NCBI GenBank assembly: GCA_964247055.1
Contig: OZ176057.1
Coordinates: forward strand, 2,294,001-2,358,000
Source: Paragordius varius
Taxonomy: Eukaryota > Animalia > Nematomorpha
Reading direction: 5' to 3'
Length of the DNA stretch: 64,000 nucleotides
The notes beneath the pieces were generated by a model, which saw nothing but the letters and a program-made list of their open reading frames with translations, made no database searches and was not told where the DNA came from. Positions 19,415 through 60,120 of the stretch are shown here, in pieces. A program made the translations under genes and the position numbers. Each line of letters starts with the position of its first letter. Positions within the stretch are counted from its first letter, which is position 1.

Positions 19415-19467
<53 letters not shown>

Positions 19468-22388
19468 TTTTAACACTTGAATACAACACATTCATTTCAG
19501 TCCTTCGATTGAAATTGGGGTAGTTGGATACCCGGAGCCTGTTTAAAATTAAAATCTTTAGAGAATATGGAAGGAATCGAAACCATGGCAAATTTGCAAT
19601 ATACCATTCTTAAACCGAAATATATAAAAAGATTTATTCAAAATACTTGATATTCGAAAACCGAAAGGCAAAAAATTAATCAACGTGACATGTTTGCAAT
19701 GGTAAAATCTAAAAATAATACAAAGTAAACCGCATTTTCTATTTCTATCATGTTGTAATTTAAATAAAATTAGCTTTAATTTTACCAAAATTATATCAAG
19801 ACGATATAAAAAATGGCGTCAAGGTAGTTTTACATGGAACTATTTTTCAAAACAAAATTTCATTTAGATATTTTGGCATATCTATAATATTCGGATAGAA
19901 GCATAAATTTAAATTCCGTTTCCTTAAGTAGTTTTTTAATCCCAAATTAAATTTAGTCTATGGTATTTAGATAGCCCGATTTGAATCGAAATTTTAATGG
20001 TTAATTATATCATACTATAGTTGGGGGGCAAATCGGAACATAGTAGTGTATGGAAAAAAGAGCAATAAAATGTTAAATACTTAATCTTTCATTTCTTTGA
20101 TACACTACTGTGTTGCAAATCGCCCTGCTATAGTGTGAAATAAGCAATTATCAATAAGTAAAAATTAAATTATACGGACAAAACGTAAAAATACAAAGAT
20201 GACATATATTTTGTTTCAAATTAAAACACTACTTTTTAAATCTTAATTCATTTGAATATAATTCAATAAAGTATAAAATAGAGATGTATATTGGTAACAC
20301 ACTCAATTACATATTTTACGATTCTTATTTAGTGATTTTAGAGCATAAGGTTAGAAAAAATATGGTTGGTTTTTTTTTTGAAAAAATTTGTCCTATAGAT
20401 AAAAAATTAAAAATATAAAAGCAAATAAATATGTTTCTTTAAAAGACAGCCATTAAACTACCAATCAATCAGAAACCTCATAATTCATTCCCAAAAATAA
20501 TTTGATTACAATTGTATTATTGTTGAATACTGCTTCATACTTTTGAAATTTAAAACATGAGTTAGTTAATTTAAAGATATCAAGTTTAAAGTAAAACGAT
20601 TAAAATATGTGTTTTAATTTTAACATTTTGTCCGTATATTTTAAATTTTATTGTAATTTATTAAAGGCTAAACAGTAAGGAGTTCAAACATCAGGGAATC
20701 TGAAAAAGTTTTTTTGCGACAAGTTTTAATTCATGATTTATTTGAATTCGCCTAATATTATTTGGCTTTGTCCTAATTTTGATAGCAATTATGAAATAAA
20801 GAGTCTAAAGATTTTGTGTTTGCAGGACCTAATTTTTTAAAAAAAATCATTTGGGTTAAATAAGTTAAAAAGGCAACTCTAAAATATGGTAAAGACTAAA
20901 TTTTGAATATTCGAAAATGAAAATTAGAAGATACACAAGAATTTAAAATTTCAAGGGTATATTTATGATATTTCAAGGGTATATTTATGATATTTCAAGT
21001 GTGTATATTAAAATTTTGAAAGTATATTAGATATAAGTCATAAAGTTGCAGAATGCATATATTTATGCTGGATTATTCACATTATAGTTAGTCAATTAGT
21101 AACACAGTTGTAAGGTATGAAAAAAGAACAAAATGGTAAAATCAAACAATTTTTTGCTATTTATCCTACAAGCTTACCTCTTTGTGCATAAAATTATGGA
21201 CAACGTTCATTTTTTAACACACGCTACTGTATAATTACAAATCGATTAATTATAATGCGAAAAGACCAGCGTAAATGAGTACATAATATAAATTAATTAA
21301 GGGTATCCAAAAACAACCCTTCAAAATTCTAAATACAAAATTCTAAATACAAAATTCTAAATACAAAATTCTAAATACAAAATCAAATCTAAGTAATTAT
21401 TTTCTTAAACAATTTTTCTTTGATAAATCTTTCCAATTTCGGCAATAAAATAGCAAAAAAATGTTAAAAAATTAATATTGATAGATGTAAAAATTGGAAT
21501 TATACGGACAAAGCGTAAAAATAAAAAGACAAATATTTTTTTTCAACGACAACCATACTTTTTGAAACCTTAATGTTTCCCATGTAAGCTATTTGGTTAC
21601 AATCGTAAAATATAGAATTGATTATGTTAGTAAAATATTTATCTATATTTCCTAAATTTAATTAAAAAGAATATATTATATTAAAATAAATCCAAGTTAT
21701 AAAAGGTATATGGTTATCTTTTAGATACAAATATTTGTCTTTAAAATTTTTACGTTTGTCCGTATAATTTGAGTTTTTACTGTAAAATTTGATAAAATTT
21801 AGCCCAATGCAGCTCTTAAAGTCAGATTTTGTTGGATACCCCCTGCAGTGAATGTTTAAGGGATTTTTTTTATATTAAAGTATTAACCTTTCTGAAATTT
21901 TATGATAGCTTCATCGTAGTAGGATTGTTCTAGGAGTGCTTGACCAGCAAAAACGTAAGCTTTAATATTCCAGGGATCTAGGGTTAGTGCTTGAGTACAG
22001 TCCTGTAAACATGCATCCCATTCTTGCAATTTGATGTGGGCCAATGCTCGATTAGTAAACAGTTTAGCATCTTTTGGATTTTTGATCTTTCGATAATATC
22101 ATATCTTATTTTATCGTTTTTTAATTTAAAAGTTTTGTTTAAATCAATAATTTAAAATACAATGTTTTTTGTTCCAATAAAAAAGATACTACAAAGTACA
22201 AAAATTTTGCGCATAGTTTTATTTCAAATAATTTTACAATATTTCAAATTAATATTGTAATTATTAATTCCAGATTAAATTTTAAAAAATACTATTGCTT
22301 GGGTATAGGATTGAATAGCATCTTGATATCTTCCACTAGAAAAATAACGATTTCCACGATTTTTTAATTCTTCAGAAGTATATGCCAT
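14542..22388 (-). CDS. STUB1: E3 ubiquitin ligase CHIP (TPR + U-box), complete, 7 exons, 287 aa
   Basis: Exons 22388-22293, 22086-21888, 19375-19210, 17322-17220, 16400-16344, 15946-15830 and 14667-14542 are all GT-AG and phase-consistent (864 nt). Motifs: [43 protein letters not shown]-box [47 protein letters not shown]...[12 protein letters not shown]...WVIDY*. Confidence 0.97.
15563..15791. mobile_element. MITE family A (21-bp repeat arms) in CHIP intron 6
   Basis: Left arm aattcaccctcgaacaatt; right arm ttgttcaagggg...tgtaaatggtg. Confidence 0.7.
16693..16962. mobile_element. MITE family A in CHIP intron 4
   Basis: Left aattcaccctcgaacaattt x2-3; right gggtgaatatgaattgtaaatggtata. Confidence 0.75.
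18801..19154. mobile_element. MITE family A in CHIP intron 3
   Basis: About 3 left units (aattcacccttaaacaattca) and about 5 right units of the 21-bp gggtgaat(gc/tt)gaattgttcaa, ending tgtaaatggt, flanked by TA. Confidence 0.85.
19421..19464. repeat. (AT)22 microsatellite
   Basis: Directly visible, at the edge of repeat family E. Confidence 0.95.
19480..19995. mobile_element. Interspersed repeat family E (MITE-like); inverted copy at about 24720-25270
   Basis: ttcatttcagtccttcgattgaaattggggtagttggatac and ggtatttagatagcccgatttgaatcgaa are near reverse complements of sequences at about 25215-25255 and 24721-24755. A related end occurs near 3140-3175. Confidence 0.65.
21322..21383. repeat. 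14-bp tandem repeat (caaaattctaaata) x4 plus a partial unit
   Basis: Units start at 21322, 21336, 21350 and 21364. Confidence 0.95.
21498..21769. mobile_element. MITE family B
   Basis: Inverted arms aattatacggacaaagcgtaaaaat / atttttacgtttgtccgtataatt, with internal gacaaccatact / gtatatggttatc. Related copies near 20167-20640 and 31273-31460. Confidence 0.7.
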
Positions 22389-26149: not shown

Positions 26150-26199
<50 letters not shown>

Positions 26200-27060
26200 G
26201 AGAAAATTAGACAATAATTGTTATATAAATAAGTAATTTTATCGATATCTAAGCTTTAAGATTGCGGATTTCCGTTTTGAGAAAATATTTCATATTCAGC
26301 CTAGGTTTTTTTATTTAATTTGAAAGAAAAACACATATAGGGCTAATTGGTCTCAAGATTTTATAGTATTAGTAAATTATTCCATGATTTATCAATTGGA
26401 AAAATATAGCTTTAAAGTATTATATAAGCTCAATTTTAAATTCATAAATTATATATGAAAAAATGGTATTCAATAAGGTTTTTTTGCGAAATAAAATTAT
26501 TTTAATATTATTTATATCTTTGTCCTGAAATACATGAAAAAATATTTTATTAAATTGTTGGTTAAAAGTATCATATGATTTATTTCTACAAATAAAAACG
26601 TTTATGAAATTTATATTATAAAAATTGTTTTATTAATAAAAGATAACGTTATAATATATTAGGCTTATTCAATTGTGAGTTTGCCTATTAACCTTATTGT
26701 CTCGAAGTTTATGTTTTCAACAATTAATTAACTCAAAAATTTTAAATGTTTTCAAAAAACTTTTTATCTTCTTATATTTTGAAATAAAAAACAAAAATTA
26801 TAGTTTTATTTTCCAATAAATTTTTTATTTAAAACCTTTTTTTTGAAAAGCGATCTTGAAGAAAAATTCTTAAGTTTATTTAATACAATACGGTTATTTC
26901 CTAATGATAATCAAATAATATAAACTTAAAAATTTGGATTGATTTTAACTACGTTTTTAATTGTTTATAATTTATATTTTATTGAATTTTTTAACTTTAT
27001 ATATATATATAGCCAACAATCTACCTTAATTTAATGTTAATAAAAAAATTTTTATGTTTT

Positions 27061-27123
<63 letters not shown>

Positions 27124-29294
27124 ATTTACAGTTCAAATTCACCCTTAAACAATTCAAATTCACCCTCGATCAATTCAAATTCACCCTCACATAAAATATA
27201 TGTTTTTGGAGATTAAAAATTAGCTATATTTTTAAAAATTAAAATTTTGTTTTGAATTAAAATAATGCTGAAAAAATAATAAACTATGCTATAAAGATAT
27301 ATTTTATATTAATAGTCCGAAAACACATAATTTATTTTTAGGGTAAATTTGAATTGTTCAAGGGTGAATTTGAATTGTTCGAGGGTGAATTTAAACTGTA
27401 AATGATATATATTAATTTTGACTGTATGATATTTAGTAATGCGTAACATGGGCAATTTACGTTTAATTTTGAATACACCAGTGTTTGCTCAAATGGCCCC
27501 CGAAAATCCAAATTCAAAATCTATCCGATTTTTGGCTCATAGTAATATAAATTTTTTATTAAATTTACTTAGTATTCCACAATGAAAATTCTGACATATT
27601 ATGAAAATATAAGAGATAAAATTTTATTCAAAAAATACTCTTTTTTATACTTTTTTATTATCTTTGATTAATAAACTAATTAATTTCAATTTTGAAATAT
27701 GTTCATCCCTTTCCCTATTTTGAAATCAAACGATGAATTATATCCAAAAAAATCCAAATTTGATGTTGTCTAGTTTTTACTGTAATTAATTTAGATTTTT
27801 AATGTATAATATTTTTTCATAGCCGAAATTACACCTAATGCCAACATTGATAAGTCAGAAACTCAGACAAATAGTAAACCCAATAAATTGGGCGTCTTCT
27901 TATTAAAGGTAAAAAATTAATTTGTTGTTTTTTTTGCAATTTTTTGAGATACAGATAAAAATAATATTATATGACAATTTGGCTTAAATTTTTATTTCTT
28001 GAACATACTTTAAGGGCATATATTTTTAATTAGTGTTAGATATATTTGTTAATTTATATTATAAATTGAGACGCTTGAATTTAAACATACATACCATTGT
28101 AAATTTGGAATATACGAAAATAATTTGTCTTACATATCATGTTTTATCACATAACTAATTATGAAAGTTTTTCATTTATTTTAATATTTTGTTGTTATTA
28201 TTATAAAACCCTAATGAGAAATTTAAACATTTTTTTAAAATATTTCTAGGATACTAATTTTATATCCCAACTATAATTATAAAATAAATTAAGAATAAAG
28301 AAATTTGAATAATTTTATCATAATTTTTTAAATAAAAAGAAAGCAAGATCATTCGCATATAATCCGTATATATTTTTTCTGTACCTATCTTAATTTTTAA
28401 CCCAATATAAAATATATGTTATGTTGCGTTACATAAACAGGGAACTAATATTACTGATATAGCAAATATGACTGAAGCCCTAAAACATCGTATAAAAAAG
28501 CAACAATCGGAAAACCACTATATTAAAATTAATGATGAAACGCAATTGACACAAAATACGGAAATTAAACATAAAGGGCAAAATATGTCCGAAAATATAA
28601 AAAATGAAATACTTAAGCAAAAAACTCCGACTAATGTTGAACCTCTTGATAACAAACTTAAAACACCGTCTAAGAATGAAAAAACGGATAATATTTGTTT
28701 AACATTAAGCAATGAAAAATCTATCCCGACTATTAAGATTGAAACCACGGAGGTAAATGATAAATTGATGACACCACAATCAAACGTTAGTTTGGAAAAA
28801 TCAACTGTTTCTGATGATAACCGAAATATTTCACCTTCTAAAGTAATGCTTTTTTGCAAAAAATTTTGTTAATTTATAAATTTGGTCAATAAAATTTTGT
28901 TGTCGTCAAATTTTTTGATTAATTTTCGTCATCTAAGGAATATTTAGTAAATTATGAGAAATAAAATTTTAAAAAAGCAGAAACCGGTTAAAGATAAAAT
29001 TAATATCAATGATACACCTATAATTTCTCATATTAAAACATTTTTTACGGATAACTAATTATTCTGGAACACAAAAAATTAAATAATCTTGTATAAATTT
29101 TAAATTTTTCAGTTAACATTCAAATTCATCCGTCGTATAGTAAGTCGATTTACTAATGAAACAACAAAATTTTGTAATAGGAAAACCCTTATTTAATGAA
29201 GTTTTTAGTTATATAATCTTTTCATGGAAAAACTTTATTCACATATTTTTTGTTTTAGGGTACAAAACGGAAATGTGAAGAACCAGAAAGTTAA
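22477..29294 (+). CDS. RANBP3: Ran-binding protein 3-like (FxFG motif + RanBD1 domain), 10 exons, 473 aa
   Basis: Exons 22477-22663, 22697-22730, 22761-22857, 22889-22964, 24155-24396, 25390-25546, 27437-27541, 27823-27908, 28441-28842 and 29259-29294 are phase-consistent (1422 nt). Motifs: FVFGKNLIDRV, LNESAQKY, LTGEENES, KLYEFD...WNERGTGNLKLN, RLIMRNMGNLRLILNT, KSIRF, GVFLL, ALKHRI. The first two exons and the last exon are less certain than the RanBD exons. Confidence 0.92.
27064..27121. repeat. (TA)29 microsatellite directly abutting a family A MITE
   Basis: Directly visible; followed immediately by ccatttacagttcaaattcacc. Confidence 0.95.
27121..27406. mobile_element. MITE family A in RANBP3 intron 6
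   Basis: Left accatttacagttcaaattcacccttaaacaattcaaattcaccctcg; right gggtgaatttgaattgttcgagggtgaatttaaactgtaaatgat. Confidence 0.85.
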
Positions 29295-32104: not shown

Positions 32105-34556
32105 CAGTGATAATCAAACCGCGGCCCGCGGGCCGCATGCGGCCCGCAGTGTGCTTTAAAAATGCACTATGACTAATATTTAATTTTTTTTAAATAATAT
32201 TTATTTTTTACCCAATTTGAAATGTAGAAAATTTTCTACATTAAAATGATTTTAAAATTTATGATTTATAGGCACACGTTGTTTCTTCTTCTTTTCTTTT
32301 TGAAATTTTTATTGCATTTCTTTTTTGTTTTCACCCATTGCACATACATTTCATTGCTATCCTGCATCATTTTTAAAACTCATTCTCATAAAATATTTTC
32401 AACTCAATATCATTAAATTTCGACCTGTTTTTTATAGCATAATTCAATTTATATTCCTATCTTTTTTACATAATATTTAAACATAAATTCAAAGGATGAC
32501 ATCTAATGCCAAAAAACGTAAATTATCCGATGAAAATCGCTCTTTTAAAAAAGAATGGGAAACTAATTTTTTTATCGTTTTAAATAACAATGTTGCTACC
32601 TGCCTTATATGCAAAGACAATATATTTATAAAAAAATTCAATATTGAAAGACATTTTAAAATCCATCATTCTCATAAATTACCAGAAAATCTTGAGGAAA
32701 GAAATGAAAAATATAAAAAATTAAAGGAATTATACGAGAAAGAAAAATCTATTATGGCCATAGCTTTTTCCCAGGAAAAAGCTGTAACATTAGCTTCGTA
32801 TGAAATATGCTATATTTTAGGAAAAAATATGAAACCGTTTACTGATTCCCAACTAATAAAAGAATGTTTAATAAATGGTTGCACTTTTTTATTTGATAAA
32901 TTCCATAATAAAGATCAAATCATGAGGCAAATTAAAAAACTTCAACTTTCTGATTCAACATGTGCTCGACGCATTGAAGATATGTCTAAATATATTTTTA
33001 ACAATACATTATTGGCTCTGAAAAATTGCAAATACTTCAGTATTGCAATCGATTCTAGCACTGATATAAGTTCAACACCTCAATGTGTGCTTTTCTTGAG
33101 ATTTTGCAACGACAACAAAATCAACGAGGAATATTTGAAATTTTTACCAATGAATAATACCACAAAAGGCAGTGATTTTCTTGAAGTAATTAGCACCTTT
33201 TTCAATAATAATGGTATATCTATGAAAAAATTGGTTTCGATCTGCACAGATGGCTGTCCCTCTATGATTAAAATAAACAAAGGGTTTATTTCTCTTTTAA
33301 AAAACAAATATAATTTGCAAAATCTATTATCCTTTCACTGCTTTATTCATCAGCAAAACTTGGTTTCGCGTGTAAAAGATGAATCACTAAATTTAGTAAT
33401 TAAAACGGTTGTCGATATAGTTAACTACATCCGTGGCAGAGAATTCAATCACCGTAAATTCAAAAACCTTCTGAAAGATATCCACAGTGAGTTTGATGAT
33501 ATTCTTTTGTACACCGCTGTGAGATGGCTAAGCCTTAACAAAGTATTGAATAGATTTTTTGATTTAAGACATGAAATTCTATTATTTATAAAAGATAACA
33601 GAAAGTTTGACGAGGAAATTAATAGTGACAAATGATGGGTTTTATTAGCCTACCTTTGCGACATTACTTATTAACTTAGTACTTTTAATACAAGTCTTCA
33701 AGGGAGCAAAATAATAACCCAATTTGCTAATCATATATTTGCTTTTGAAGAAAAATTAATAATATATAAACAAGATTTTATAGATAAAACACTCCTACAT
33801 TTTCCAACACTCAAAACGATTTATTAAGAAAATATGGAATTTACCGCGGATATTAATTTAATAATAGACAATCATTTAACATTTTTATCTAATGAGATGA
33901 AATTCAGATTTCAAGAATTAAAAAATATAAAAAATTGCTTAAAGCTAGTGGAAAATCCATGGCATATGGATATATCCAACATTAAGCAACTTGAGCTTTT
34001 CGGTTTTGATCAGGCGGTTATCATTGAAGAATTCGTTGATTTTAAAAATGATTCCAATTTGGAAGCTATATTTAAGGAAAACCGTAGAGAAGAAAGATAT
34101 GTAGAGTTTTGGCAAGTTGTGCCAAATAAATATGAAAATATAAAAAAATGTGCTCAAGTTGTCTTAACTATTTTTCCATCAACTTACACATGTGGACGGC
34201 ATATTCAAAAATGAAGTATATTAAGAATACTTACAGAAATCGCTTAACTAATGATCACATGGACGACGTATTAAGAATGGCCTGTCATGAGGCGAAACCA
34301 AATTTGTCAAAAATTATTGGTTAATATTAAAATAAATGTTGTTATCAATATATTTTAATTTTTAAAACTAAATGGTACAAAACGAATTTTTAGCTGGATT
34401 TACATGCGACCCGCAAAAAATTTATTGTGCTGATTTAGAGTATAAATATGTGCGTTGTCAAATAGCTATGGAATATTAGCCATTATAAGGTTCATGGCCC
34501 TCGAAAAAAAAATATGTTTTATTTGGCCCGTCAAATTTTTTTGGTGAGTACCACTG
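32105..34556 (+). mobile_element. Full-length (2452 bp) Buster/SPIN/Charlie-type hAT DNA transposon
   Basis: Perfect 8-bp TSD gtctaaag at 32097-32104 and 34557-34564 (nnnTAnnn pattern). Imperfect TIRs cagtgataatca / tgagtaccactg. The 5' subterminal GC palindrome is cggcccgcgggccgcatgcggcccgc. Confidence 0.96.
32496..34324 (+). pseudogene. hAT transposase (GTF2IRD2/SPIN-like) with 3 premature stops and 1 frameshift
   Basis: BED-like CLIC...HFKIHH, IDSSTD, CTDGCPSM, HCFIHQQ, VRWLS and PSTYTC motifs are present. In-frame stops occur at 33633 (TGA), 33672 (TAA) and 33825 (TAA). A 1-nt loss near 34196 shifts the tail AYSKMKYIKNTYRNRLTNDHMDDVLRMA, which ends in TAA at 34322-34324. Confidence 0.93.
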
Positions 34557-35559
34557 GTCTAAAGCCTGTAGCTTCTTGTTTATCGTTGAGCACATCATGG
34601 ATGTGTAATTTTTGTCGCATTTATTACCAGAATACCTACATTGTTAAAAATAAAAAAATTTTCATATTAGCTGTAGTTTAAAATGATAAGCGTTATAGTT
34701 AAATCATTAATTATTAGTTTACACATAATTTAATATTCTTTTACTCAATATGAAAACTAAATTTTATAAAACATATAAAGTTGACGCAAAAATACTTAAT
34801 TATTGAGGACCACATTGAAGGCAAAATCCATATAATATACATTATTTTAATATGAAATACACATGCATTTTAGCATGGCTAAAAACACTTTGATAATTTA
34901 ACAAAAACATAAGACAAAACTATTTATAAAAACAGGTGTCCAACCCAAGGTCCTCTCAAATATTATAAAGGGCCAATGGAAAATTGGGAAATAAAAAATT
35001 TCATAATTTTCAAAATATGTATTTTTATTTAATGAAAGTGGTATTTCTTAAATAAATCATTTGAGTATCATTGGAAATTTTGTGTACGAACTACAGAAGC
35101 TTAGCTTAGATTTCTACGCCCTGCGTATGAATCCTTGATGGTGTTCACCTCTATACGACCCCTTGCATTCTAAAAAAATAAGTAAATTTAAACCGTTGTC
35201 ATGACCACTTATAAAAAGCTGTTTATAATAACTATTATTATTTACTTACGAACTGTCAAAAATTGGTAAAATAAATTATATTTTCATTGGGCTAATATTT
35301 TATTTTACAATCTTATGTTTGAAAATCGAATAAAATATAAATACCATTCATTATGTTTTTCAAAATGCGGTCCGTGAGGCCATTAAAGCACCACTGTATA
35401 AAGAAATAATTTAAACGGGGTCATAGTAAAGACAATTAAATTAATTTAAACTGGTTTAGGCCAGGTCCAATCTAGTCATATCCAGTCATGATGCCCTTTG
35501 TTATATTTAATGCAATATTAAAATATATATGATAAAATTGAAACATTTTACCATGTTTA

Positions 35560-35598
<39 letters not shown>

Positions 35599-35894
35599 AC
35601 CCTTTTAACTGTAAAAAGCTCATTGAAATTTTATCATGCTTAATTAAATATTTGTAATATACCAAATCAATCAGTACGTGATAATAAAACGGTTAAAAGA
35701 AAATCGGTCCTAAAAAGAGCCTATGCTGACCTAATTTCATAAGATTCGTTACAGATAAAGGGGGGTTTAAATTAAAAATCGAATTGAGGATTGCATAAGA
35801 TTTCAAAATAACCAAATATATTAAAAAAACTATATAAGCCAGGAGGTGTCCGTTGTAATATTATTATAAAATTCCTTTAACGACTTTTTATGCT

Positions 35895-37833
35895 ATGGAG
35901 TATTCACTACTATTAACATCCATCTATCTTTTTTTCGGTAGTCCTTGGGGGGTAAAACTCATTTTATGGTTATCATATGTATAGAATGGGTTTTTTCCTA
36001 TTTTAAAACTTCATAACCTTTTCTATTAGATTTTTTAAATTTAAGATGGCGGCCAAAAGGTTTGAGGTGAGGATTTTTTTGCAATTTCACATTTTTTTTA
36101 AAAAAAATTCCATTATCTACCTAAAAGGATAAAGAAAGCACATTTATATATTCGGCCTAATACCTTATCTACTTTTTAAATTCTCAAATTTCACATTGCT
36201 TTGATAAATAAAAGACCCAAAAAGTTATGAAGTAGTAAAAGGCACATTATAATTTAATTTTTTGTTTATAAAATTTTATTTTTGAAATTTTTTAACATTA
36301 TACATTATATTATTCATTTTCTATCAGGATACTATGTAGGGGAACCTTATATTGGGGATATTAGATATACGGAATATTATAAAGATAGACCATACCATGT
36401 ATAAATATTATAAAATAATTTTATGTTGTAGCTTAGTTAATATTAACTGACCAAATTTTTTATATTTTTTTAATCTATTCGATTTCCTTATTTTAGGTTA
36501 AAATAGTATTACCATCCAAAAATTGTCAAGGAAGCTATGTGTCACGAAAACACATTTTAACATTAAAGGAGTGCGTGGAAGGCGTCGAGTATGTTGAAAA
36601 AATATCATTTACAAAATTTAATATTTTTTCTGATAAATTGACATAAGAATCAATTTTTCATACTATATGATAGGATTAATATATTTACATTTGGAAAAAA
36701 CGAATTTTTATTTTACATATAATTCTTTAGTCCGAATGCCATATTAATCCAGGGGGGAAAACCTTTAAAAGAATTTAACATCCAAGTAGAACGGGTTATA
36801 AATGGGCCTGAAAACAATCCCTTATCATTGGTCTTACTTAAGGAGGAACAAAATGTGGTTCCAACGCTATCTGTGAATGTCCCACTACCATTATTAAATC
36901 TATCGCTAATAAATTTACCATCACTGCCTTTTTACATGCAACACTACAACAATCCGTGCCATGTTTTTAGATTTGGCGTATACCAAGGATTCCTCAATAA
37001 AGTGGCCTCTTGTATGTTACATTTCTATGATCATGTTAAGAAGATTATTCGCACATTTTAAAGATTAATGACTCTGATTTCATATTTCATTTAATGTAAA
37101 ACAAACTTTAAAAGCATTTTTGTTATACTCTTTTGGCATACATATATACATATATAATGTCTTTTTCAGTTTTCCACATAAGTGAGCAAACTATAGAACA
37201 AGACGCGGAACGCCATTATCACAACGTATATCCGAACGATATAGAAAGCAAAAACAGTTCTAATATTGTTTTAGTTGAGAATAAGAGAGTAGAGGATCAT
37301 GATTATGAATGCCAAGTATGACATATTTCATATATTTAGTGTCGCAATCTCATTTATGTGAGTATATATATAACTATAAAAATATTTAAATTTTATTATA
37401 TCACCTCAAAGATTTATAATTACATTATGTAACAGTAGATATAAAATAAAAACAAATGTATGTAGAAAAAATAATACATAAGAATCCTATATCATTAATT
37501 CCTGTATATCTTTTATAAAACCATATGATTACACTTGAGATAGTATGTTTTAAATTTACATCTCTACTCATTATTTTGCGACCTAATAATTTATTAGGGA
37601 ATATAAAAATTAGGTTTGTCTTTTATTGTTTTTGTGTTATTTTTATGATTATTATTTAGAATGACTTAGGAATGCCTTTGATTTGTTATCATTATGGTGA
37701 TATTCTATTAGCCGTACGAAAAGATACGGTATGTCAACGAGACAAGCAAGTGTATTATTCGGTTCACCATTATAGCGATTTCATCAAGGTGGAATTGGGG
37801 AGAAAAGATATACCGAAATTAAAGATAGTTTAA
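35895..37833 (+). CDS. Probably secreted trypsin-fold (S1A) serine protease homolog, catalytically dead, 6 exons, 268 aa
   Basis: Exons 35895-35937 (signal-like MEYSLLLTSIYLFFG, tentative), 36328-36398, 36497-36588, 36731-37011, 37170-37315 and 37660-37833 are phase-consistent (807 nt). Motif matches: PYHVKI=PWQVSL, CQGSYVSRKHILTLKEC=CGGSLI..WVLTAAHC, NPLSLVLL=NDIALLKL, CHVFRFG=C.VSGWG, ECQ|NDLGMPLIC=CQ|GDSGGPLVC (phase-0 intron at the classic position), VYYSVHHYSDFI=VYTRVS.Y.DWI. Confidence 0.8.
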
Positions 37834-39447
37834 AATTTTTGATGAAAATTAATTGTGATTTATGCAAATCTATTTATCATAATACTGTGATTCTAATGAT
37901 ATAGTATAGTGGGATTAAAACATAATAAAGTGTCGCATTTGGTTTAAAAAGTATTGTGTATTGGATACATTTTGAAGATTAAAGCATGGGGACTTTTAAT
38001 TTTAACGTTGAATCCTAAAACGGTTCTTACCCATCATATATAAAGTAATTAGCACTGAAATTAGCTAGGTTGCATATGATGCTATTTGTTGATATGATTT
38101 TGGGTATTTATTGGTTGCTCTGAGGTGATATATTACCTAATAATAGGAGTAGTACTGTTTTGGTAAAGTAATACACTCATTGTAAAAAATATTCGGTAAG
38201 GAAAATGATGACAAAAGGCGAGATTGCTATTTCATAAACTCCTCCATTCACGCACTGATACTAATGGCTGGAAATATGCAAAATTAATTTTTATATCCAA
38301 GAATTTGAGGCTTTCGGACCCAAATCTAAAATTTCAAATTGAATAAAAATATTGTTTTCTTTTTTATACGTAGTTTTTGGTATAATTTAGTGATATTTTT
38401 TGGATGAAAAAATTAGCCTTAATCAAAAAAAAATTATTAAAACAAAATGTGCCCAAATTTTGCCCTTTTCTGCTTTAGGGCAATTACCACAAAATTTTAA
38501 TAACTTTTAAAGGCCAATATATACCATGATAATCCTGATACATTTTACTACCAGAACATATATTTTATTCACCAAACTATATTTGGAATATGTATATATT
38601 ATTGGGTTATCTTTTTCTAGCCTCCGATATACACTGTGTATATCAGGTAGTAATTTTTTAAGACGTTATATAACCGCATCATGACTAGTTATATTAAATA
38701 TTCAAGATATATCATTTTAAAAATTAGGGTTGGGAAGAATAATTTTCTAAGGGGTATGTATTTACGAAACAAATTATTTCAACAAAACAGGTTGAAAACA
38801 AAAAAATAATATTGTTTGAAAACCATTATTACCGAAATCTCGATTTATATTTCTTGTGATGTCACAATAACCATTGTCATACCAATCTTTACTCATTTAA
38901 ATAATTTTATATTTTTACATCAAACAATCTATATTTTTATTTATATGTATAGGAGGTTGCAAGCGAATTTTAAAAAAATTATTTCCGCATAAGGTTTAAA
39001 AATAGATTTAGTTTGAAGCGAATACTCCGAGAGTTACTGAACCTTGTCTAGTCAATTTTGCCCTATTAATGGACCTTGACCAAGGGACTTATATTTAAAT
39101 AATGATTCAGATAATATATGAATATATAAATTAAAAAAATTCTATTTTCGAATTCGTTTTCAGGTTTCCAAACCCCATTTTAACCCGGAAAAAAAGAATC
39201 AACCAACAATACAACAAAATTCCATTTTTATAAGCGAATAAGCCTAAACATTTAGAAAATGTTTCACCCAAAAAATATTTGGATAACCTATGTTTAAGAA
39301 GGGGACGGAACTGATAGGTTAAAAAAATCTGTCACCATCAGTGCATTCTTAATTAAACAAATTCATTATAACATACCTAAAAATCAAACAGATATTAGTT
39401 TAAAGGCTATTTGCCCGGAAAATTTAGTTAAGATTTGGAATCCAGGA

Positions 39448-39667
39448 CAGAGCCTGGCTAGAGGGGGGAAGGAGGACTGACGCACCTGGTGCCATAGTTG
39501 AAGGGTCACCAGATTTCAAGAAATTTTAATTTTATTTCAAAAAATAGGTATTTAAAAGTTATCATTTGAAATAATACATAAGATTTTCATTTATGAGTGG
39601 TAATGAACACCGTTAGAATTTGATTATTTTTTAATATGGGGCGCCAAGAATGAAATATAAGCCTCTG
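39448..39667. mobile_element. hAT-type MITE (220 bp), also present in the duplicate at about 57970-58190
   Basis: Termini cagagcctggct / aagcctctg with degenerate 8-bp TSD atccagga / atttagga (copy 2: atccagta / attcagga). Confidence 0.55.
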
Positions 39668-40769
39668 ATTTAGGAGTAATTTTTGTTTATTGTAGCGGAT
39701 CATTGAGCCACATTAACCTTATTTTAACCCTCCCCTGAAAAATAGGATGTGTGAACAATTAATGGAATTTTCCCGAAACTTTTATGTCCATTTTATTCAA
39801 AATGATTAATGAAATGTGCTGTGGGTGACCATGTTGTTTTCCTATTGCCATTGTTTAGACCCCTTTCTTTCTAAAATATGTATCAAAACAAAAATTATGG
39901 TTATTCTATTCTCAGGCCCTTCAGTTTACCTGTACCCTCTGGAAAAACGGTTTTAAAAAATTGCCTTAAGGCAACTTTTAAAAAGTGTACCCCATTTCAA
40001 ATTAAAAGGATCATTTTAATAGTGTTTTGAGGGTAAGGGGGCATTTTTTAGCATTAAGTCTACTTAGCCCACACCTGTAAATAAGGATTCTTTTTGTAAA
40101 AATATTAAGGTTTTGAACCAATTTTTTGCTAATAATGTAGGTTCATTTGATTTTAAAATTGGAATTTTTTTCCATTTATTAATACGCATATGATGACTGA
40201 ATTTTTTTGATTAGCTCAGTGATTTCACCAATTCCACATGAAAATACGGTTTGGAAACTTATATTAATTTTGAAACAATTTTCTGTGAAACATGTTTAAT
40301 TAATTTTTATAAATGTCCCGACAGTGATTGAACCCGTTATGAACCATGTATATGTATTTATCTGCGCGTTTTTTTCTATAAACTATGTATCCCAAATAAA
40401 ATCCTTGAAATTTTATTGGGCACACTTATAGGGGCATATAATTTGGTTTATGGTTTTATGCTCTTATTATTTCGCTTGACAGTGCTTTTACTGGCTGTAT
40501 AAGGCTCCCCACCTCCTTTAAAACATACCCAAACAAAAATATCTTAAACACATTTCCCGCCTCAATAAAAAAATACAAATACAGTTTAGACCTTCTTTTT
40601 CATTAAAGAATAAGGACTTAAATTGTATCCGGACATGTGAAGGCTTTAAAACACGCCTGCTCAGCGCTGACAGTGATGATGTAAAAATTGCGTAGTTTCG
40701 GATTTCAATCTCTGGAACGAAGAGTCCGCCGCCCTCTCTATTATACCATCCAATATGTCCGATTTATTA

Positions 40770-40860
40770 ATTGAATTATGGTCGAGCGACTGTTTTACTC
40801 CTATGATTAATCCTAGATTATTTGTTAATACAATATCCAATATTACATCGAACCTCTAAA
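40770..40860 (-). mobile_element. Possible APE-endonuclease fragment of a CR1/L2-like LINE
   Basis: Minus strand ILDIVLTNNLGLIIGVKQSLDHNSI resembles LDLVLTN...LV...SDH..I. Confidence 0.35.
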
Positions 40861-41896
40861 ATTAAGTTGTGTATAAATAGATGTATGTTAACTTTATTAA
40901 AGTGTAGAGTATTTAATATAGGGAATTTCGTTTATGATGACAATAATAGGGATGAATGTGAAATAAAGAGATGGTAAGATATTTTTTGGTATTTTTGTGT
41001 CGGGCTTATTTATCTCTTTTATCCATAAGGTCAGTTTTTTAAAAGTTTTCATTTTATGCCGATTTATCGATCGAAATAACCATATTGCAACGCGCGACTG
41101 GGCCAGTTAGCATTTCAATCAAATTCTCCCGGTTATCTGCTTTAATATTATAAATTTATTGTTATATAAGTAAAGATTGAACCACCAAAAAAATTTCAAA
41201 AAAATAAACCGCTAAAATAAAGATTGTTCATTATAAAGTGAATGAAACAGAACTAGAAGCAAAATATTTCAAAAACTAATCATAAGATCATAAAATTTAG
41301 TTTGTTCTGAATTTGGGTATATAATTTTACTGAGTTACTTTTTTTATGATGTGAAAAAAATAAATGCCAATATGAAACAATCCTATCAGTGCTTTTATGT
41401 GATTGAATACCATTTTTAAACTCCAAGTTATGAAATACTCAGCGTGTCATATTTTAGTTTTTATATAAAATATATAAATATTACTTTTGAAAAATAGGAA
41501 AAAATATTTAATTATTACGAAAATATATATGCATACTACTGTGTATACCTCCTTTTTTCAACTCTATATATTATATATTTACCTGTATTTTTTTCATGTT
41601 TTTAAATGACAAAAATATATCTAATAACATCTACTCTATACCATTTGGCCCGAAGCCTTTTCTGGGCTTTATTTTATGACGAAAAACGACATTTTTTGCT
41701 ATTCTAATTTTGTTTCGAAATTTTCCCCATCTTTTAAATGGCATAAACCATCCATTTTTTTAAATATTTTTTAAATTTTAATATACAAACTTATTCGGTG
41801 TCGGAAAAGGTATGTATATATAAATGATAATTTTATTATTTTTGTGGTTTAAGTGCCTTTTTTAGATAATATTAGATTCAAACAAGGATTGATTTA

Positions 41897-42089
41897 CAGT
41901 ATGAGTAAGTATACATTGCTAGAAAATTATTAATTATTTCCAAATAGTGAATACAACAAAGGGCAATATTATTGGCTATGAATAGTAAAAAGTGAAAAAA
42001 ATAACTATAGGCCAATAATACTGCCCAAGTTTTATTTACTATTTGGCAATAATTAATAACTTTCTAGCAATGTATACTTACTCATACTG
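41897..42089. mobile_element. Tc1/mariner-type MITE family C (193 bp)
   Basis: Perfect TIR cagtatgagtaagtatacattgctagaaa / tttctagcaatgtatacttactcatactg with flanking TA on both sides. The duplicate is at 60438-60631. Confidence 0.9.
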
Positions 42090-42873
42090 TATACCTTTTT
42101 CGATGACATAACGATTAGTATTTATTTTAAATCATAAATTATTCGATGAAATTTATTTAATTTAGGGGAGGGAGGGGGGGCACAAATTGATTTATTAGTT
42201 TTTAAGATCGTAGGAAAAGATTTAATAAAAAAACTAATCCCGCCGTTTTAAATTATAGTGGATTTGTTGTTTGAAAAAATAATTAATTTATTTTTATTGT
42301 TTAAATAAAAAGCAGGTAGTAGAGACCAAACTACCACCTATAAAGTATTATAGTCTATGAGCATTTGCATTTTAATTAAAATTAAGATTAAAATGCAAAC
42401 GCGCACCTCTTAAATGCCAAAAAATACGAAACACGAATCAAGGTGTATTTTAATCCCTTCCCCCCCCCCCCCCTTTTTTTTCGTTATATAATTCTTTTTT
42501 TTCAAATTTAATCAAAATTTTTTATAATACCTATATATATAGGGTTTGATAAACTTTAATAATAAAATCAATAGTTTATTTTTATTCAAAATTTTTTTAA
42601 AAAATTTAATTGTTATAAATGCATTTTAACAAATTTATATAATTTTGGAATTTGATACTTTTTGCAAGACTTATTATTACACTTTAATTGGAGCGTTCAG
42701 AAATTATCCGAATTACATTGCCATAAAATCAATTCACATCTCTTTAAGAACCTTGTTTTTATGAGAGCATAATATGTGCCAATATTGGTATATAAAGGTA
42801 TAAATTGAAATTATATCCAGAAAAATTCTATATGGACAGATAAAATCTCCAGTTTTACTTATATTGTTGGATC

Positions 42874-45800
42874 ATGATCTCCGCAAATACAGCCACAGAT
42901 AAAATTCATAACATTATTGAGGATATATATAAGGTATAATTTTAAAATTTATATTTTTTGAAATTACAATTAAACTTATTTTGGCGACTAATCTTTCCTC
43001 TTGTTCACAGAAATATATTTTACAGACACATATATATTAATGATTTAATGTATTACTTATGTTTTAGCAGACAAAAGCTTTTTTCAGAATTTCAAATGGT
43101 TTTAAAAGGACTGTATATATCTTTAAAACATTTATGCTTAGTATTTTTGATAAATAATACTTCTTTATGATAGCTTAGAAACTCTCTTTTATGTTTTGTC
43201 ATACTATCTATTTTTTAATTTTATAGTTATTTTATCAATTTTACAAAAATTTTACAAATTAAGTGAAAGTTATTTATAGACTTTTTTTCGCCTTATTTTT
43301 CCCTTTCCATCATTGTGTAAAGTATAAATGAACTAACAAAACAGTATAATCTGTGCTTAACCTTGATTTAATTTTTGAAAGTTTTTTCTACTAATTTTTA
43401 CTACTGTTTTTAGTTATTAGGTTATATTAGGTTATATATCTTCTCATATTACCAAAGACACATAGCGAAACATTTTCTTTTGCGCTATAATATTAAAAAA
43501 GTCTATCCTATGAGAGAAGATATTTAACAGATGTGAAATATAATTTTTAAAAAAATGTTTATATAATCTGTTAGTTTAAAAATGAAATTTTATATATGAA
43601 AATAAAATCTAAAAACATTTTTTAGTTTAAATAATTTAAAAAGAAAGTTTTTGAAATTTTCATCACACATCTAAGTAATTCTATCATATCGAAATTCGAA
43701 AAATCTTCGCACATTAGTATATATTATACTGATTGTTGAATGCCTTATTCCAAATTATAAAATTTTAAAAAAATTAGTAGGCTCTGAAAGTCGCCAATTA
43801 TTTTACAAGAGACTTGATTTATTAAAATAAACGCAAAGGCCCCAAGCTTGCAGTTATTTGAATGAATGCTAGAACGGCCTCAATAAAAATTAGTTTAATG
43901 TATGTTTTTGATTTAACTCGATTTTGAAAATTTAATTTTTCATTAAGATGATAGAAATGATAAGTATCATCGAAGTATATAAAATAGTGTTTTGAGATCC
44001 TAAAGCCACCTTTTCCACCATGCTTTATGATACTATAAAATGCGCTCAAACAATTGTTAAATTTAAATCTTAGAAGCAAAAACTAAATTTATTTTTTGAA
44101 TTATAATCCAAGATATATTGGTACTTTGGGGAAGCAAACTGATCCATTTAAGGGAGAAGGGGATAACAATTTGAGATTTCCGGAACCAACTTTTAAAATT
44201 AAAATTTTATTTATTTGCCATTAATTGAATCATGTATTTCATGATGTTTTTTGGTGAACTCAGCTTTTATCAAAAAACTATTTAGCATTAGATGCTCAAA
44301 TTTTGCGATTATTGCAGGTAATTTTTATACCTGCAATCAAGTCCACCGAGAACACGTCTATAAGTGGAAAATTAGTTAACAACTCTAAGTCAGAATTCAG
44401 TTCAATTTTTAGCACCTGTTTAGCAATTATTTGTTTACCTTATCTTAATTTAAAATCCACAATTAGTAAAATTGTGCAAGTGGATCCTGTTCAGTTTAAA
44501 TAGAAGCATTCTTTAATAAAGAATCGGTTTACATCCGTAACATAAGGATCAACTCTAAAACCAAATATTTAAAATATTAGAAGCTTTTTTAAATAGAGTT
44601 TCTCAATGGGTATTTTGTTCTCGTTTTAACTGAATTTTAGATTGATAATAATCACAATCATATTTTAATGGATTAAAAATACTCTTATTATGCATTGTTT
44701 TGGCCATAAGTTTCATTACGACCGCGGGTTAAATTATTTAAAGTAGAGAGCATTTTTCAATTTAGATTTAAATTTTAATATATTACACAATTAATAGTGA
44801 AAGGTTTAATTATATGTCTTTCGTTTTTCCATTTCTCCTAAAACTTTATATTTTAGTGCCAAATAATTTTTAAGGTTTTTTTTAAAAGGTCTCACTTTCT
44901 TTTTTTACAATTTAATTTAGTAAATATACACGTGAATCATTAATTTTTAACATTATGATTTATGATGAAATGACAATTTGATAAAAATTATATGATAATA
45001 CAAATTCAATTAATTTACCATATCATTATATAGAATCTCATGGAAAATTATATTCCTTTGAGTCGACACTTGGTGCAACAAACCAAACTGTTTGTTAAAT
45101 CATTGAATGGTAAGCTTATTCATTCCTTTAAATCTGGGGTGTCCAACACAAATAGCTCCACAGTCCCTCATTTTTGGATTGAAAAATTTGGTGGGCCTCA
45201 TTACCAAAATATACTGGCATCAACAAATATTTTGTTAGATTTTACACTTAAGTTTGTAAAACGACCATATGTTTCAACATTTTTTTGCCAGTTCATGGAA
45301 GGGAACTTTATTCAAAATATTGTCAAAGAAAATCAAATTTTCTTAAATTTCCTAAGATTTTGTATTTTCTGAAATTTATCGCCAGGCTGCAAAACTATTT
45401 TGGAGAGCGACGTGTTGGACACCCCTGCTTTAAATTAATTTAAAAAATGAATATTTTTCTTATTTTTAATTTCTAATAAACTTTAAGCTGCTTGCCATTC
45501 TGAGAAATGTTATTTTGAAGCCCTCAACAAAATCGGTCAAAATGCGGGTGAAAGATGGGGCGATACTAAAGACATTGGTAATTTTAGCTGATAGTTTTTT
45601 AAAATAAATACAGTAAAAAAAATAAAGCATAAAACAGCTATGAATGTGTTAAAAAACTAAACTATATTTCTTTTTATCGTTAAATAATTAAATTTAAAAT
45701 GCGGTTATTAGGAATATAAATGTTTAGACTTTTACTTTTTTTAAGTAATTTTTGCAGAACTCAGATTTTTGCATATTAATTTTATTTTTTTCAATTTTAT

Positions 45801-55503: not shown

Positions 55504-55618
55504 ATATTTCTGAATGCGTTGTAAAATTATATTTTACCAGGAGTTTCCAACACCCCAAGTAATATTTTTTATACCAAATTTTAGGAAATCTAAGATAAAT
55601 CAATTTTATTAAACAATA

Positions 55619-56226
55619 CGGAACGCCATTATCACAACGTATACCCGAATGATATAGAAAGCAAAAACAGTTCTAATATTGTTTTAGTTGAGAATAAGAG
55701 AGTAGAGGATCATGATTATGAATGCCAAGTATGACATATTTCAAATATTTAGTGCCGCATTATCATTTATGTGTATATTTATATAACTATAAAAATATTA
55801 AAATTTTATTATACCACCTCAAAGATTTATAATTACTCTATGTAACAGTAGAAATATAATAAAACAAATTGTGTAAAGGAAAAATATTTCATAAGAATCC
55901 TAAATGTTTATTTCTGTATATCTTTTATAAAACCATATGATTACACTTGAGATAGTATGTTTTTACATCTCTACTATTGCGACCTAATAATATCTTAGGG
56001 AATATGAAAAATACGTTTGTCTTTTATTGTTTATGTGTTATTTTTATAATTTTTATTTAGAACTTAGGAATGCCTTTGATTTGTTATCACTATGGTGATA
56101 TTCTATTAGCCATACGGATAGGTATGTCAACGAGACAGGCAAATGTATTATTCGGTTCAGCATTATAGCGATTTTATCAAGGTGGAATTGGGAAGAAAAG
56201 ATATGCCTAAATTAAAGATAATTTAA
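55619..56226 (+). pseudogene. 5'-truncated, frameshifted remnant of the pseudo-protease gene (part of exon 5 plus exon 6)
   Basis: The exon-5 part differs from 37206-37315 by 2 synonymous changes. The exon-6 copy (56061-56226) has a 3-nt deletion in NDLG, a net 5-nt deletion near 56115-56125 causing a frameshift and early TAG, and several missense changes. Confidence 0.85.
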
Positions 56227-59173
56227 AATTTTTGATGAAAATTAATTGTGATTTATGCAAATTATTTATCATAATGTGATTTTTTTAATAATATAGATGT
56301 GGGAATTATAATAAAGTGTCGCATTTGGTTTAAAAAGTAGTGTGTATTGGATGTATTTTGAAGATTAAAGCATGGGGACTTTTAATTTAAACATTGAATC
56401 CTAAAACGGTTCTTACCCATCATATATAAAGTAATTAGCACCGAAATCAGCTAGGTTGCATATGATGATACTTGTTGACATAATTTTGGTATATATTCGT
56501 TGCTTTGAGGTGTATATTACTTAATAATAGGAGTACTCCTGTTTTGGTGTGGTAATACACTCATTGTAAATAATATTCGTTGAGGAAAATGGTGACAAAA
56601 GGCGAGATTTTTTCATAAACTCCTCCATTCACGCACTGATACTAATGGCTGGAAATATGCAAAATTGATTTTTTATACTGGTATTAAGGCCGACGTCTAC
56701 TAAGAAGGAATCAATTGACACTATCAAGGCTTTAGAATCACCGTCAATGTATTGTAGAGAGTTGTAATGCTAAAAGACGGAAAGAGACTTTTTCTATTTT
56801 ATAGGGTCCAAGAATATGAGGCTTTCGGGACCCACATCTAAAATTTCAAATTGAATAAAAATATTGTTTCCCCTTTTATACGTAGTTTTTGGTATAATTT
56901 AGTGATATTTTTTGGATAAAAAAATTAGACTTAATCAAAATAAAATTATTAAAACAAAATGTGCGCAAATTTTGCCCTTTTCTGTTTTAGGGCAATTACC
57001 ACAAAATTTAAATAACTTTTAAGGGCCAATATATACCATGATAATCCTGATACATTTTACTACCAGAATATATATTTTAATTCACCAAACTATATTTGGA
57101 ATATGTATATATTATTGAATTATCTTTTTCTTGCCTCAAATTTTTTACACTGTGTATAACAAGTAGTAATTTTTTAGGACGTTATATAACCGCATCATGA
57201 CTAGTTATATTTAATGTTCAATATATATCATTTTAAAAATTAGTGTAGGGAACATTAATTTTATAAGGGGTATGTATTTATAAAACAAATTACTTCAACA
57301 AAACAGGTTGAAAGCAAAAAAATTGAAATATTGTTTGAAAACCATTATTACCGAAATCTCGATTTATATCTCTTGTGATGTCACAATAACCATTGTCATA
57401 CCAATCTTTACTCATTTGAATAATTTTATATTTTTACATCAAAAAATCTATATTTTATTTGAAAATGTAGAGGAGGTTGGAAGCGATTTTTTTAAAAAAA
57501 ATCCCCATAAGTTTTAATAATATATTCAATTTAAAACGAATACGCCGAGAGTTACCGAATCTTGTCAAATTGGCCCCTCAATTTCAATGCACATTGACCA
57601 AGGGACTAATATTAAAAAAATGATTCAGTTAACATCGGCATATTTATAGATGAAAAAAATCAATTTTCAAATTCTTACAGGTTTTTGGGTTTCCAAACCC
57701 TAACACGACAAAAAAAATCAATCTCCCTGGGCCCAATACAACAAAATTCCATTTTTATAAGCGAATAAGCCTAAACATTGAAAAAATGCTTCACCCAAAA
57801 AATATTTTCAAAACCTATGTTTAAGAAGGTAACACTAATGAGTTAAATAACTCTGTCACCATCAGTGCATTCAATTAACCAAATTCATTATAACATACCT
57901 AAAAATCAAATAGATATTAGTTTAAAGGCTATTTGCCCGGAAAATTTGGTTAAGATTTGGAATCCAGTACAGAGGCCTGGCTAGAGGTGGGGAAGGAAGG
58001 GCACCAGGCCCCATAGTTGAAAGGTCACCAGATTTCAACAAATTTTAATTTTATTTAAAAAAATAGGTATTTAAAAGCTATCATTTAAAATAAAACTTAA
58101 AAAATTCATTTATTTATGAGTGGTAATGTCCACCGTTAGAATTTGATTATTTTTAAATAGGGGCGCCAAAAATGCAGGCTACGCCTCTAATTCAGGAGTA
58201 AATTTTGATCAATAAATGTACCGAGTCACTGAACCACATTTTGATAACCCTATTTTAACCCTCCCCTGAAGAATAGGATATGTGAACAATTATTGGTTTC
58301 GTAATTTTCCCGAAATTTCATTTTAATTAAAATGTAAATTTTCTAATTTATTGATTATTAAATGTGCTGTGGGTGACCATGTTTTTCTAATGCTATTGTT
58401 TAAACCCCCTTCCTTTCTAAAATATGTATCAGAACAAAAATTAATATTAAATCAATTCTACGACCTTTTGTAGCCTCTCGAAAAACGGTTTTAAAAATTG
58501 GTAGCAACTTTCAAAAAATGTACGCCAATTCAAATTAAATGGATCTTAGTAAGAGGGCATTTTTTAGCATTAATCTCTACTTATTCAGACGCATGTAAAA
58601 TAGGTTTTTTTGTAAAAATGTTGTGACTTTAAACCAGTTTTTTGCTAATAATGTAGGTTCATTTGATTTTAAAATTGGAATTTTTTCCATTTATTAATAC
58701 GCCTATGAGGACTGAATTTTTTTAATGTTTAAGCTTATAATAATTTTGTAACCATTTTCTGTGAAACGTGTATAATTATTTTTTATAAATGTCCCAAGAG
58801 TTGAACCCTTGAACCATGTATTTAGCTGTGCTTCTTAAGTTTTTTTCTCAAAAAATATGTATCCCAAAAAAATCTTAAAAATTTTTGGCACATAGAGGCA
58901 TATTATGGTTTTATGGTCTTATGATTTCGCTTACAGAGAGGTATTTGAGAGTTTGGCTGCTTAAGGCTCCTCACCTCTTTGAATTAGGCCCGAAATATTT
59001 TAAACACGATATCCAACTCAATAGATTCCATTTATCGTCGAGTGATTGTTTTACTCCTTTGATTAATCCTAGCTTAATTGTTGATACAATATGCAATATT
59101 ATATCGAACATTCAAAAATAAGTTGACAGTGAATGCGAAATCAAGAGATGGTTAAGACATTGTTTTCATATAT

Positions 59174-59501
59174 ACCATTTACAGTTTAAATTTACCCTTG
59201 ACTCAAATTCACCCTCGAACAACTCAAATTCACCCTTGAACCTTTCAAATTCACCCTACATTTCAAATTCACCCTTGAACAATTAAAATTCATCCAAAAA
59301 TAAATTATGTGTTTTCTAACTAATATAAAACTTATTATTAATATAAATTATATCTTTTTTCAGTATTATTTTAATTTAAAACAAAATTTTATTTCTTAAA
59401 AATATATTAAAATATAGACAATTTTTAATCTTAAAAAGTATGTTATTTATTTGAGGGTGAATTAAAATTGTTCAAGGGTTGAATGGTTTAAGGGTGAATT
59501 T
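59174..59501. mobile_element. MITE family A present only in duplicate copy 2
   Basis: accatttacagtttaaatttaccc...aattcaccc repeats on the left and gggtgaatt on the right. The orthologous copy 1 position (about 40985) lacks it. Confidence 0.8.

Positions 59502-60074: not shown

Positions 60075-60120
<46 letters not shown>

Follow-up and report, generated by a model that had tools for sequence, protein, structure and literature searches.

A probably lineage-restricted family of probably non-catalytic proteins derived from S1A protease genes in a probable nematomorph genome

Does a gene that keeps the exon plan of a trypsin gene, with its catalytic residues replaced, encode a protein put to another use, or is it a protease gene in decay? 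The question is raised by a six-exon gene at positions 35895-37833 of G000:C8:2294001-2358000, a stretch of 64,000 nucleotides (nt) from an animal genome assembly of 110.6 Mb. The window, in what follows, is the whole of that stretch, and positions given without a contig refer to it. An initial annotation described the gene as encoding a secreted, 268-residue trypsin-fold pseudo-enzyme in which the entire catalytic triad had been replaced, and judged that it was probably not a pseudogene. The analysis reported here indicates that the locus is one of twelve in a lineage-restricted family that arose from S1A (chymotrypsin-fold) genes, is non-catalytic and has been kept by selection, a reading to which a probability of about 0.72 is assigned.

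The six-exon model was rebuilt exactly from the raw sequence. Its exons (e1 to e6) sum to 807 nt, equal to 268 codons and a stop codon, and its introns are all of the GT-AG type, with phases of 1, 0, 2, 1 and 0. The motifs read as replacements of the catalytic residues, TLKEC in e3, NPLSL in e4 and NDLGMP in e6, were all found, and the cysteine count was exactly six. Exons e3, e4, e5 and e6 encode 30, 93, 48 and 57 residues, respectively. The end of e5 (..YECQ) and the start of e6 (NDLGMPLIC) are separated by a phase-0 intron, which stands right before NDLGMP as it does before GDSGGP in the genome's canonical S1 genes; the classic intron before the Ser195 motif had been recognized correctly. 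Base composition was 35.7% GC in the exons compared to 25.8% GC in the window, which is very AT-rich eukaryotic DNA and does not resemble human sequence. As had been noted, the bacterial-style list of open reading frames (ORFs) contains only fragments of the gene; on the minus strand across 35895-37833 this list holds no convincing overlapping gene.

Searches of the genome for paralogs, carried out by tblastn-type comparison and by profile scans, identified twelve loci that share the exon plan, the splice sites and the intron phases. Since these features recur at eleven further genomic loci, the gene is not a product of chance. At least four copies (L027, L029, L031 and L036) are intact from e1 to e6, and two are broken, L028 by a stop codon in e5 and L030 by a stop codon and a frameshift. 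Intact paralogs are located, for example, at C4:6.222-6.225 Mb and C3:10.552-10.555 Mb.

Selection on the family was measured as the ratio of nonsynonymous to synonymous substitution rates (dN/dS, or omega), using Nei-Gojobori counts summed exon by exon. Over e3 to e6 this ratio was between 0.12 and 0.24 in all paralog pairs; a value near 1 against orthologs had been named as evidence against a functional gene, and the values obtained, which come from paralogs, favour the initial annotation. For the gene in the window and its closest paralog, dS was 0.70 and omega 0.205. Exon e3 by itself gave an omega of 0.01-0.16 at a dS of 0.3-1.0. Because e3 still shows a dS of this size, its near-identity between copies is due to selection; gene conversion was considered as the cause and was ruled out, since synonymous differences are no fewer in e3 than in the other exons. 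The family is held by purifying selection, which acts most strongly on e3, the remodelled 'active-site' exon.

Similarity to S1A proteases was assessed exon by exon. Family alignments of e3, e4, e5 and e6 (A3, A1, A8 and A2, respectively) were compared, using hhalign, with alignments of the matching exons from bona fide PF00089 genes of the same genome (A5, A6/A9, A7 and A4). The e3 profile matched the canonical His57 exons with a probability of 83% and an expectation value (E) of 9e-6, and this alignment placed cysteines at C42 and C58 and a glutamate under His57; the C42-C58 spacing, at 16 residues, is identical to that of S1 proteases. The e6 profile matched the canonical Ser195 exons with a probability of 85-88% and an E of 3-6e-6; D-L-G-M-P-L-x-C was aligned over D-S-G-G-P-L-x-C, a second cysteine over C220, and Y..DFI over Y..DWI. 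When all four family exons were compared with all four canonical exons, matches lay on the diagonal only, and all twelve off-diagonal controls had an E of at least 0.1. Measured against a null of 40 column shuffles each, the scores of e3 and e6 were approximately 7.5 and 15 standard units (z), respectively, above the null.

External collections were consistent with this result for e6. A search of the PDB with the e6 profile returned plasma kallikrein catalytic domains as all of its top 15 matches (best E of 0.023), the alignment extending from D194 to the C-terminal helix in the pattern DSGGPLVC..C..Y..W, and 24 of the 30 nearest clusters in the ESM Atlas were Trypsin. The same PDB profile search with e3 gave no S1 match. 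Gene structure was compared as well. The exon classes of canonical S1 genes cover approximately positions 18-46, 47-134, 135-177 and 177-220 of PF00089 and mirror e3 to e6. From the e2/e3 junction onwards the intron phases of the family are 0, 2, 1 and 0; the canonical genes L038 and L042 show 2, 1 and 0 at the corresponding places, the acceptor that matches the first of these junctions is of phase 0 in L041, and in all of these genes an intron lies directly before G193. Intron positions in the family and in the canonical genes agree to within one residue, except at the e4/e5 junction, which is displaced by about 7 residues to a later position. Taken from profiles and intron positions, descent from an S1A protease gene is well supported for both ends of the core, namely e3 and e6.

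A number of observations weigh against this reading. No Pfam family, PF00089 included, was matched at E ≤ 10 when each exon was searched separately, and a six-frame PF00089 scan of the genome, which yielded 95 exon matches elsewhere, gave none at the 35895-37833 locus. Alignment of e4 with the canonical exons was collinear, with NPLSL over NDIxL and PC..RFGV over C..GWG, but its E of 0.008-0.06 did not rise above the shuffled controls, and a deeper profile of 18 canonical Asp102 exons also failed to beat them; e4 had no S1 match in the PDB profile search and nothing was found with it in the ESM Atlas. No match was obtained between e5 and the canonical exons. Approximately half of the protein, encoded by e4 and e5, is therefore without significant S1 similarity. 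An AlphaFold2 model of the e6 fragment alone, built with the family alignment, had a predicted local distance difference test (pLDDT) of 51 and was unusable. To these must be added that exon 1 of this copy is short by one base, a point taken up below.

The same negative results favour an alternative in which the resemblance to trypsin is due to chance and the family is an unrelated cysteine-rich secreted protein; no Pfam match was found, e4 and e5 are unplaced by similarity, and a large protein search was empty of relatives. Against it, e3 and e6 are independent matches, each to its proper S1 exon and to no other, and they stand in the expected order; the PDB and the ESM Atlas both indicate S1 for e6, the C42-C58 spacing is identical, and four intron positions and phases are as in the local trypsin genes. 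This alternative is considered very improbable. Descent from S1A genes is preferred. The trypsin fold that had been proposed thus stands as S1A descent, on the e3 and e6 profiles, the kallikrein matches and the intron positions, whereas none of the exons is recognized by PF00089; retention of the whole two-beta-barrel fold is a step that we infer only, because e4 and e5 show no significant S1 similarity.

The protein search just mentioned was a HMMER scan with the e4 family profile against 1.84 billion protein representatives, from which the genome of the window and possibly near ones were excluded. It gave three matches, all of them to unrelated bacterial or simple-repeat sequences; e4 is the least conserved exon. 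A length-limited word-index protein search with e4, which counts as a weak negative, gave no match. The family is likely to be lineage-restricted.

Two of the three catalytic replacements could be placed by significant alignments, those of e3 and e6: position 57, histidine in active proteases, is glutamate, and position 195 is leucine rather than serine. For the third, the replacement of Asp102 by proline, the NPLSL motif is present, but the assignment is positional and the underlying alignment was no better than shuffled controls. Within the family Glu57 is invariant, as are Asn193, Asp194, Gly196, Met197 and Pro198. Position 195 is leucine in nine of the ten copies and arginine in the tenth, L035. 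The oxyanion-hole residue Gly193 has become asparagine, and the S214-W215-G216 strand is R-K-D or a close variant in the family. Canonical serine-protease catalysis is impossible for the family, since a glutamate stands in for the general base and a leucine or arginine for the nucleophile, next to Asn193 and an R-K-D strand.

The (near) invariance of Glu57, Asp194 and their neighbours is what an active site would show as well, and on that ground the proteins might still be hydrolases that use non-canonical residues, for example Glu57. There is, however, no nucleophile at position 195 in the leucine-bearing copies or in L035, Gly193 is replaced by asparagine, residues 214-216 are R-K-D, and no protein of S1 fold is known to us to cleave in the absence of Ser195. 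Retained hydrolase activity is accordingly given hardly any weight, and a non-catalytic family is preferred.

All six cysteines are invariant in the family. Four of them, equivalent to C42, C58, C201 and C220, were set by significant matches, while the identification of the other two as C136 and C191 is by position. The joint loss of the C168/C182 pair was confirmed, as the pair is absent from every copy in the e5 alignment. An N-x-S sequon in e5 is present in six of the seven aligned full-length e5 copies. The family proteins are probably secreted, because the paralogs have a signal-like exon 1, the six cysteines are invariant and the N-x-S sequon is largely conserved.

In the paralogs, exon 1 has a length of 58 nt and encodes M-x-x-[ST], 10-11 hydrophobic residues and ..S-L-G, followed by one base of a split glycine codon (phase 1). 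In the window, the ATG and the homologous donor are 57 nt apart, compared to 58 nt in six paralogs, and the missing base falls within, or next to, the six consecutive G residues at 35947-35952. Splicing from the homologous donor puts e2 out of frame and leads to a stop after three codons, and no phase-0 e2 acceptor or alternative start codon that would rescue this donor was found in the sequence. The open frame of 268 codons requires a cryptic donor, G|gtagtc, located 14 nt upstream of the homologous one; its use removes a ..S-P-W-G tail, together with the cleavage-site region that the paralogs keep. Cryptic donor use at 35938 is possible, because GTAG-type donors are used at the same e1/e2 junction in two paralogs, L029 and L035. 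The proposal that the frame is intact over six exons consequently holds with the cryptic donor at 35938, but with the donor homologous to that of the paralogs the result is a premature stop.

These observations bring in another explanation, in which the rest of the family is functional but this member has lately become a pseudogene through a one-base deletion in its signal-peptide exon, and the 268-codon frame is an artefact of the cryptic donor. Besides the 57-nt exon, the lack of a phase-0 acceptor for e2 and the loss of the ..S-L-G cleavage region, it is favoured by surroundings that hold transposon remains and a broken partial duplicate, and by other copies that are plainly broken (L028 and L030). 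Set against it are the intact state of e2 to e6, the GTAG-type donors of L029 and L035, and the position of the shortfall, since a run of six G residues in a genome of 26% GC is a typical site of assembly miscounts. When changes were polarised with outgroups, the branch of this gene carried 13 nonsynonymous and 13 synonymous changes, compared to 12 and 16 on the branch of its sister. There is no sign of relaxed constraint on the branch of this gene; its ratio is as low as that of the sister, and any inactivation must therefore have been very recent.

Recent disablement of this copy is judged to have somewhat less than an even chance, and it overlaps with the reading of a selected, non-catalytic family, which holds at the level of the family. 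As far as this copy is concerned, exon 1 casts doubt on the earlier verdict that a pseudogene is improbable, although the branch of the copy shows no loosening of constraint. The sequence leaves three readings: a G run miscounted in the assembly, rescue by the cryptic donor, or a very recent pseudogene. The copy would yield a 268-residue protein only by way of the cryptic donor or if the assembly had miscounted the G run; otherwise it would be freshly disabled. The exons of the gene, the loci of the family and the partial second copy are listed in the Table.

Table. Features of the gene and its family. Positions without a contig are those of the window; residue numbers are those of S1 equivalents.
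Feature	Position	Strand	Remarks
e1, as initially annotated	35895..35937	+	ATG, hydrophobic signal-like stretch and 1 base of split Gly codon; ends at cryptic donor G|gtagtc (GT 35938-35939)
Remainder of ancestral exon 1	35938..35951	+	Up to homologous donor gtaaaa (GT 35952-35953); one base shorter than in six paralogs (7-locus DNA alignment)
e2, variable N-terminal segment	36328..36398	+	Ends ..KDRPYH; acceptor needs a phase-1 donor; position of the IVGG..PWQ segment of S1 proteases
e3, His57 exon	36497..36588	+	C42, C58, Glu for His57 (TLKEC); most conserved part of family
e4, supposed Asp102 exon	36731..37011	+	NPLSL where S1 has NDIxL; variable insert; C136 equivalent (PC..RFGV)
e5, unrecognisable middle segment	37170..37315	+	No C168/C182; largely conserved N-x-S sequon; ends ..YECQ (C191, Q192)
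e6 and stop, Ser195 exon	37660..37833	+	NDLGMPLIC where S1 has GDSGGPLVC; C201, C220; RKD where S1 has S214-W215-G216; C-terminal ..Y.DFIK
Partial second gene copy	55615..56223	+	Part of e5 and all of e6; e6 frameshifted (tblastn, blastn)
Family locus	C8, 35895-37833 of window		The gene analysed here
Family locus	C4 6.222 Mb		Closest paralog, 63-97% identity per exon
Family pair	C3 1.557-1.573 Mb		
Seven-copy array	C3 10.33-10.55 Mb		
Partial family copy	C5		

The ending of e2, ..KD.P.H|gt, is kept in the paralogs. The seven-copy array has canonical trypsin genes, recognized by PF00089, on either side, at 10.19, 10.59 and 10.76 Mb of C3, and because it lies between such genes an origin of the family by tandem duplication at C3 10.19-10.76 Mb is suggested. 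Inside the array, L032 (C3:10362123-10363092) and L033 (C3:10375261-10376230) encode an identical protein over exons 3-6, which points to a recent tandem duplication approximately 13 kb long.

A segmental duplication was detected in the window by blastn: positions 37206-45519 match 55619-64000 collinearly at 80-89% identity over at least 8.3 kb, as far as the window end. Since the duplication starts in the middle of e5, the second copy of the gene comprises only part of e5 together with e6. Remains of hAT-type transposons are located upstream of the gene at 32496-34214 (plus strand), and a related piece lies near the window start at 5497-6024 (plus strand); a 379-residue ORF in these remains has a weak DUF4371 match and a 126-residue ORF a weak match to the hAT dimerisation domain. 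Microsatellites of the (TA)n type occur throughout the window, for example at 19416-19475, 26150-26208, 27044-27128 and 60076-60131, and one such tract, at 35545-35599, is situated 300 nt upstream of the start codon of the gene.

Other features of the assembly bear on its source. A mitochondrial contig, L059 (G000:C44:5980-10320), contains zero-loop hairpins with arms of 97-131 nt, and just upstream of cox1 it has a tandem array of units spaced at 72 nt, each with a perfect palindrome of 49-52 nt; these features lie at 53-314, 773-1472 and 4064-4257 of the contig. Palindrome-rich mitochondrial genomes are a hallmark of Nematomorpha (PMC6649704), and the hairpins of L059 fit this pattern. According to one preprint, the nematomorph genomes studied so far are 200-300 Mb in size (10.1101/2024.06.11.598342), compared to 110.6 Mb for this assembly. 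The animal is thus probably, though not certainly, a horsehair worm, and probably neither an arthropod nor a mite.

What such proteins might do can be put forward in conditional terms. They may act as non-cleaving binders in which the remodelled former cleft serves as a contact surface, as is the case for other dead S1 proteins. A candidate partner, at the level of speculation, would be a component of a protease cascade, either of the host or endogenous; a cascade in the host haemolymph comes to mind given that the genome is probably that of a parasitic hairworm. A more specific version of this proposal is that the family is a nematomorph invention consisting of secreted S1-fold decoys, whose invariant cleft (Glu57, Asn193-Asp194-Leu195 and Arg-Lys-Asp at 214-216) would bind a component of the insect-host haemolymph cascade, such as the clip proteases or the protease-homolog cofactors of prophenoloxidase activation, so that the juvenile worm could blunt melanisation or immunity during its growth inside the host. 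We regard this version as unlikely.

Dead trypsin homologs are common, and in that respect the basic finding is unsurprising. What is added is a family, backed by selection, that standard domain scans miss, in a phylum that is almost without functional annotation. If the animal is a horsehair worm, the predicted secretion of the family and the strong constraint on its remodelled cleft make it a reasonable candidate for the interaction between parasite and host. For annotation, genes left as orphans by PF00089 can be placed by comparing profiles exon by exon and by taking intron positions into account. For this copy, the label of an intact gene needs reads or RNA.

Several groups of catalytically dead S1 proteins are available for comparison. 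In insects, a large share of S1A proteins is non-catalytic; in Tenebrio, the triad is complete in 137 out of 269 S1A genes (PMC11172050), and Drosophila spheroide is an example of the arthropod serine protease homologs, or SPHs (PMC5718610). Like the SPHs, the present family is S1A-derived and multi-copy, has replaced catalytic residues and is probably secreted, and binding, not cleavage, is the proposed mode of action in both. Immune SPHs usually carry a clip domain and are recognized by PF00089, whereas this family escapes PF00089 in every exon and has no clip domain; after the signal-like exon, only the variable, cysteine-free e2 of approximately 23 residues precedes the S1 core. It also differs from arthropod SPHs in its probable nematomorph source, and no sequence relatives were found.

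The scabies mite SMIPP-S proteins, for which inhibition of the lectin pathway of complement has been shown (PMC4031079), provide a second parallel, as they too are S1 proteins without catalytic function that have multiplied within a single parasite lineage, and they are secreted, as the present family is predicted to be. They belong to another phylum, have no detectable sequence relationship to the hairworm family and carry other replacement residues, and of the two families inhibition is known for SMIPP-S only. Nematode DUF316 (PF03761), a diverged trypsin-like family from another ecdysozoan worm phylum, appeared as a cluster at rank 19 (score 0.89) among the ESM Atlas neighbours of e6; membership of that family is unsupported, as no exon matches PF03761 at E ≤ 10.

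In vertebrates, azurocidin/HBP, haptoglobin, HGF/MSP and protein Z are S1-fold proteins that have been reused as binding modules after loss of the triad; such proteins mostly keep the PF00089 signature and are often multi-domain. The hairworm family is of independent origin, is single-domain and has diverged much further in its central part. Because a clip domain, matches to PF00089 or PF03761 and detectable relatives in sequence are all lacking, the family is best regarded as one of highly diverged, dead S1 proteins that stands outside the SPH, SMIPP-S and vertebrate families.

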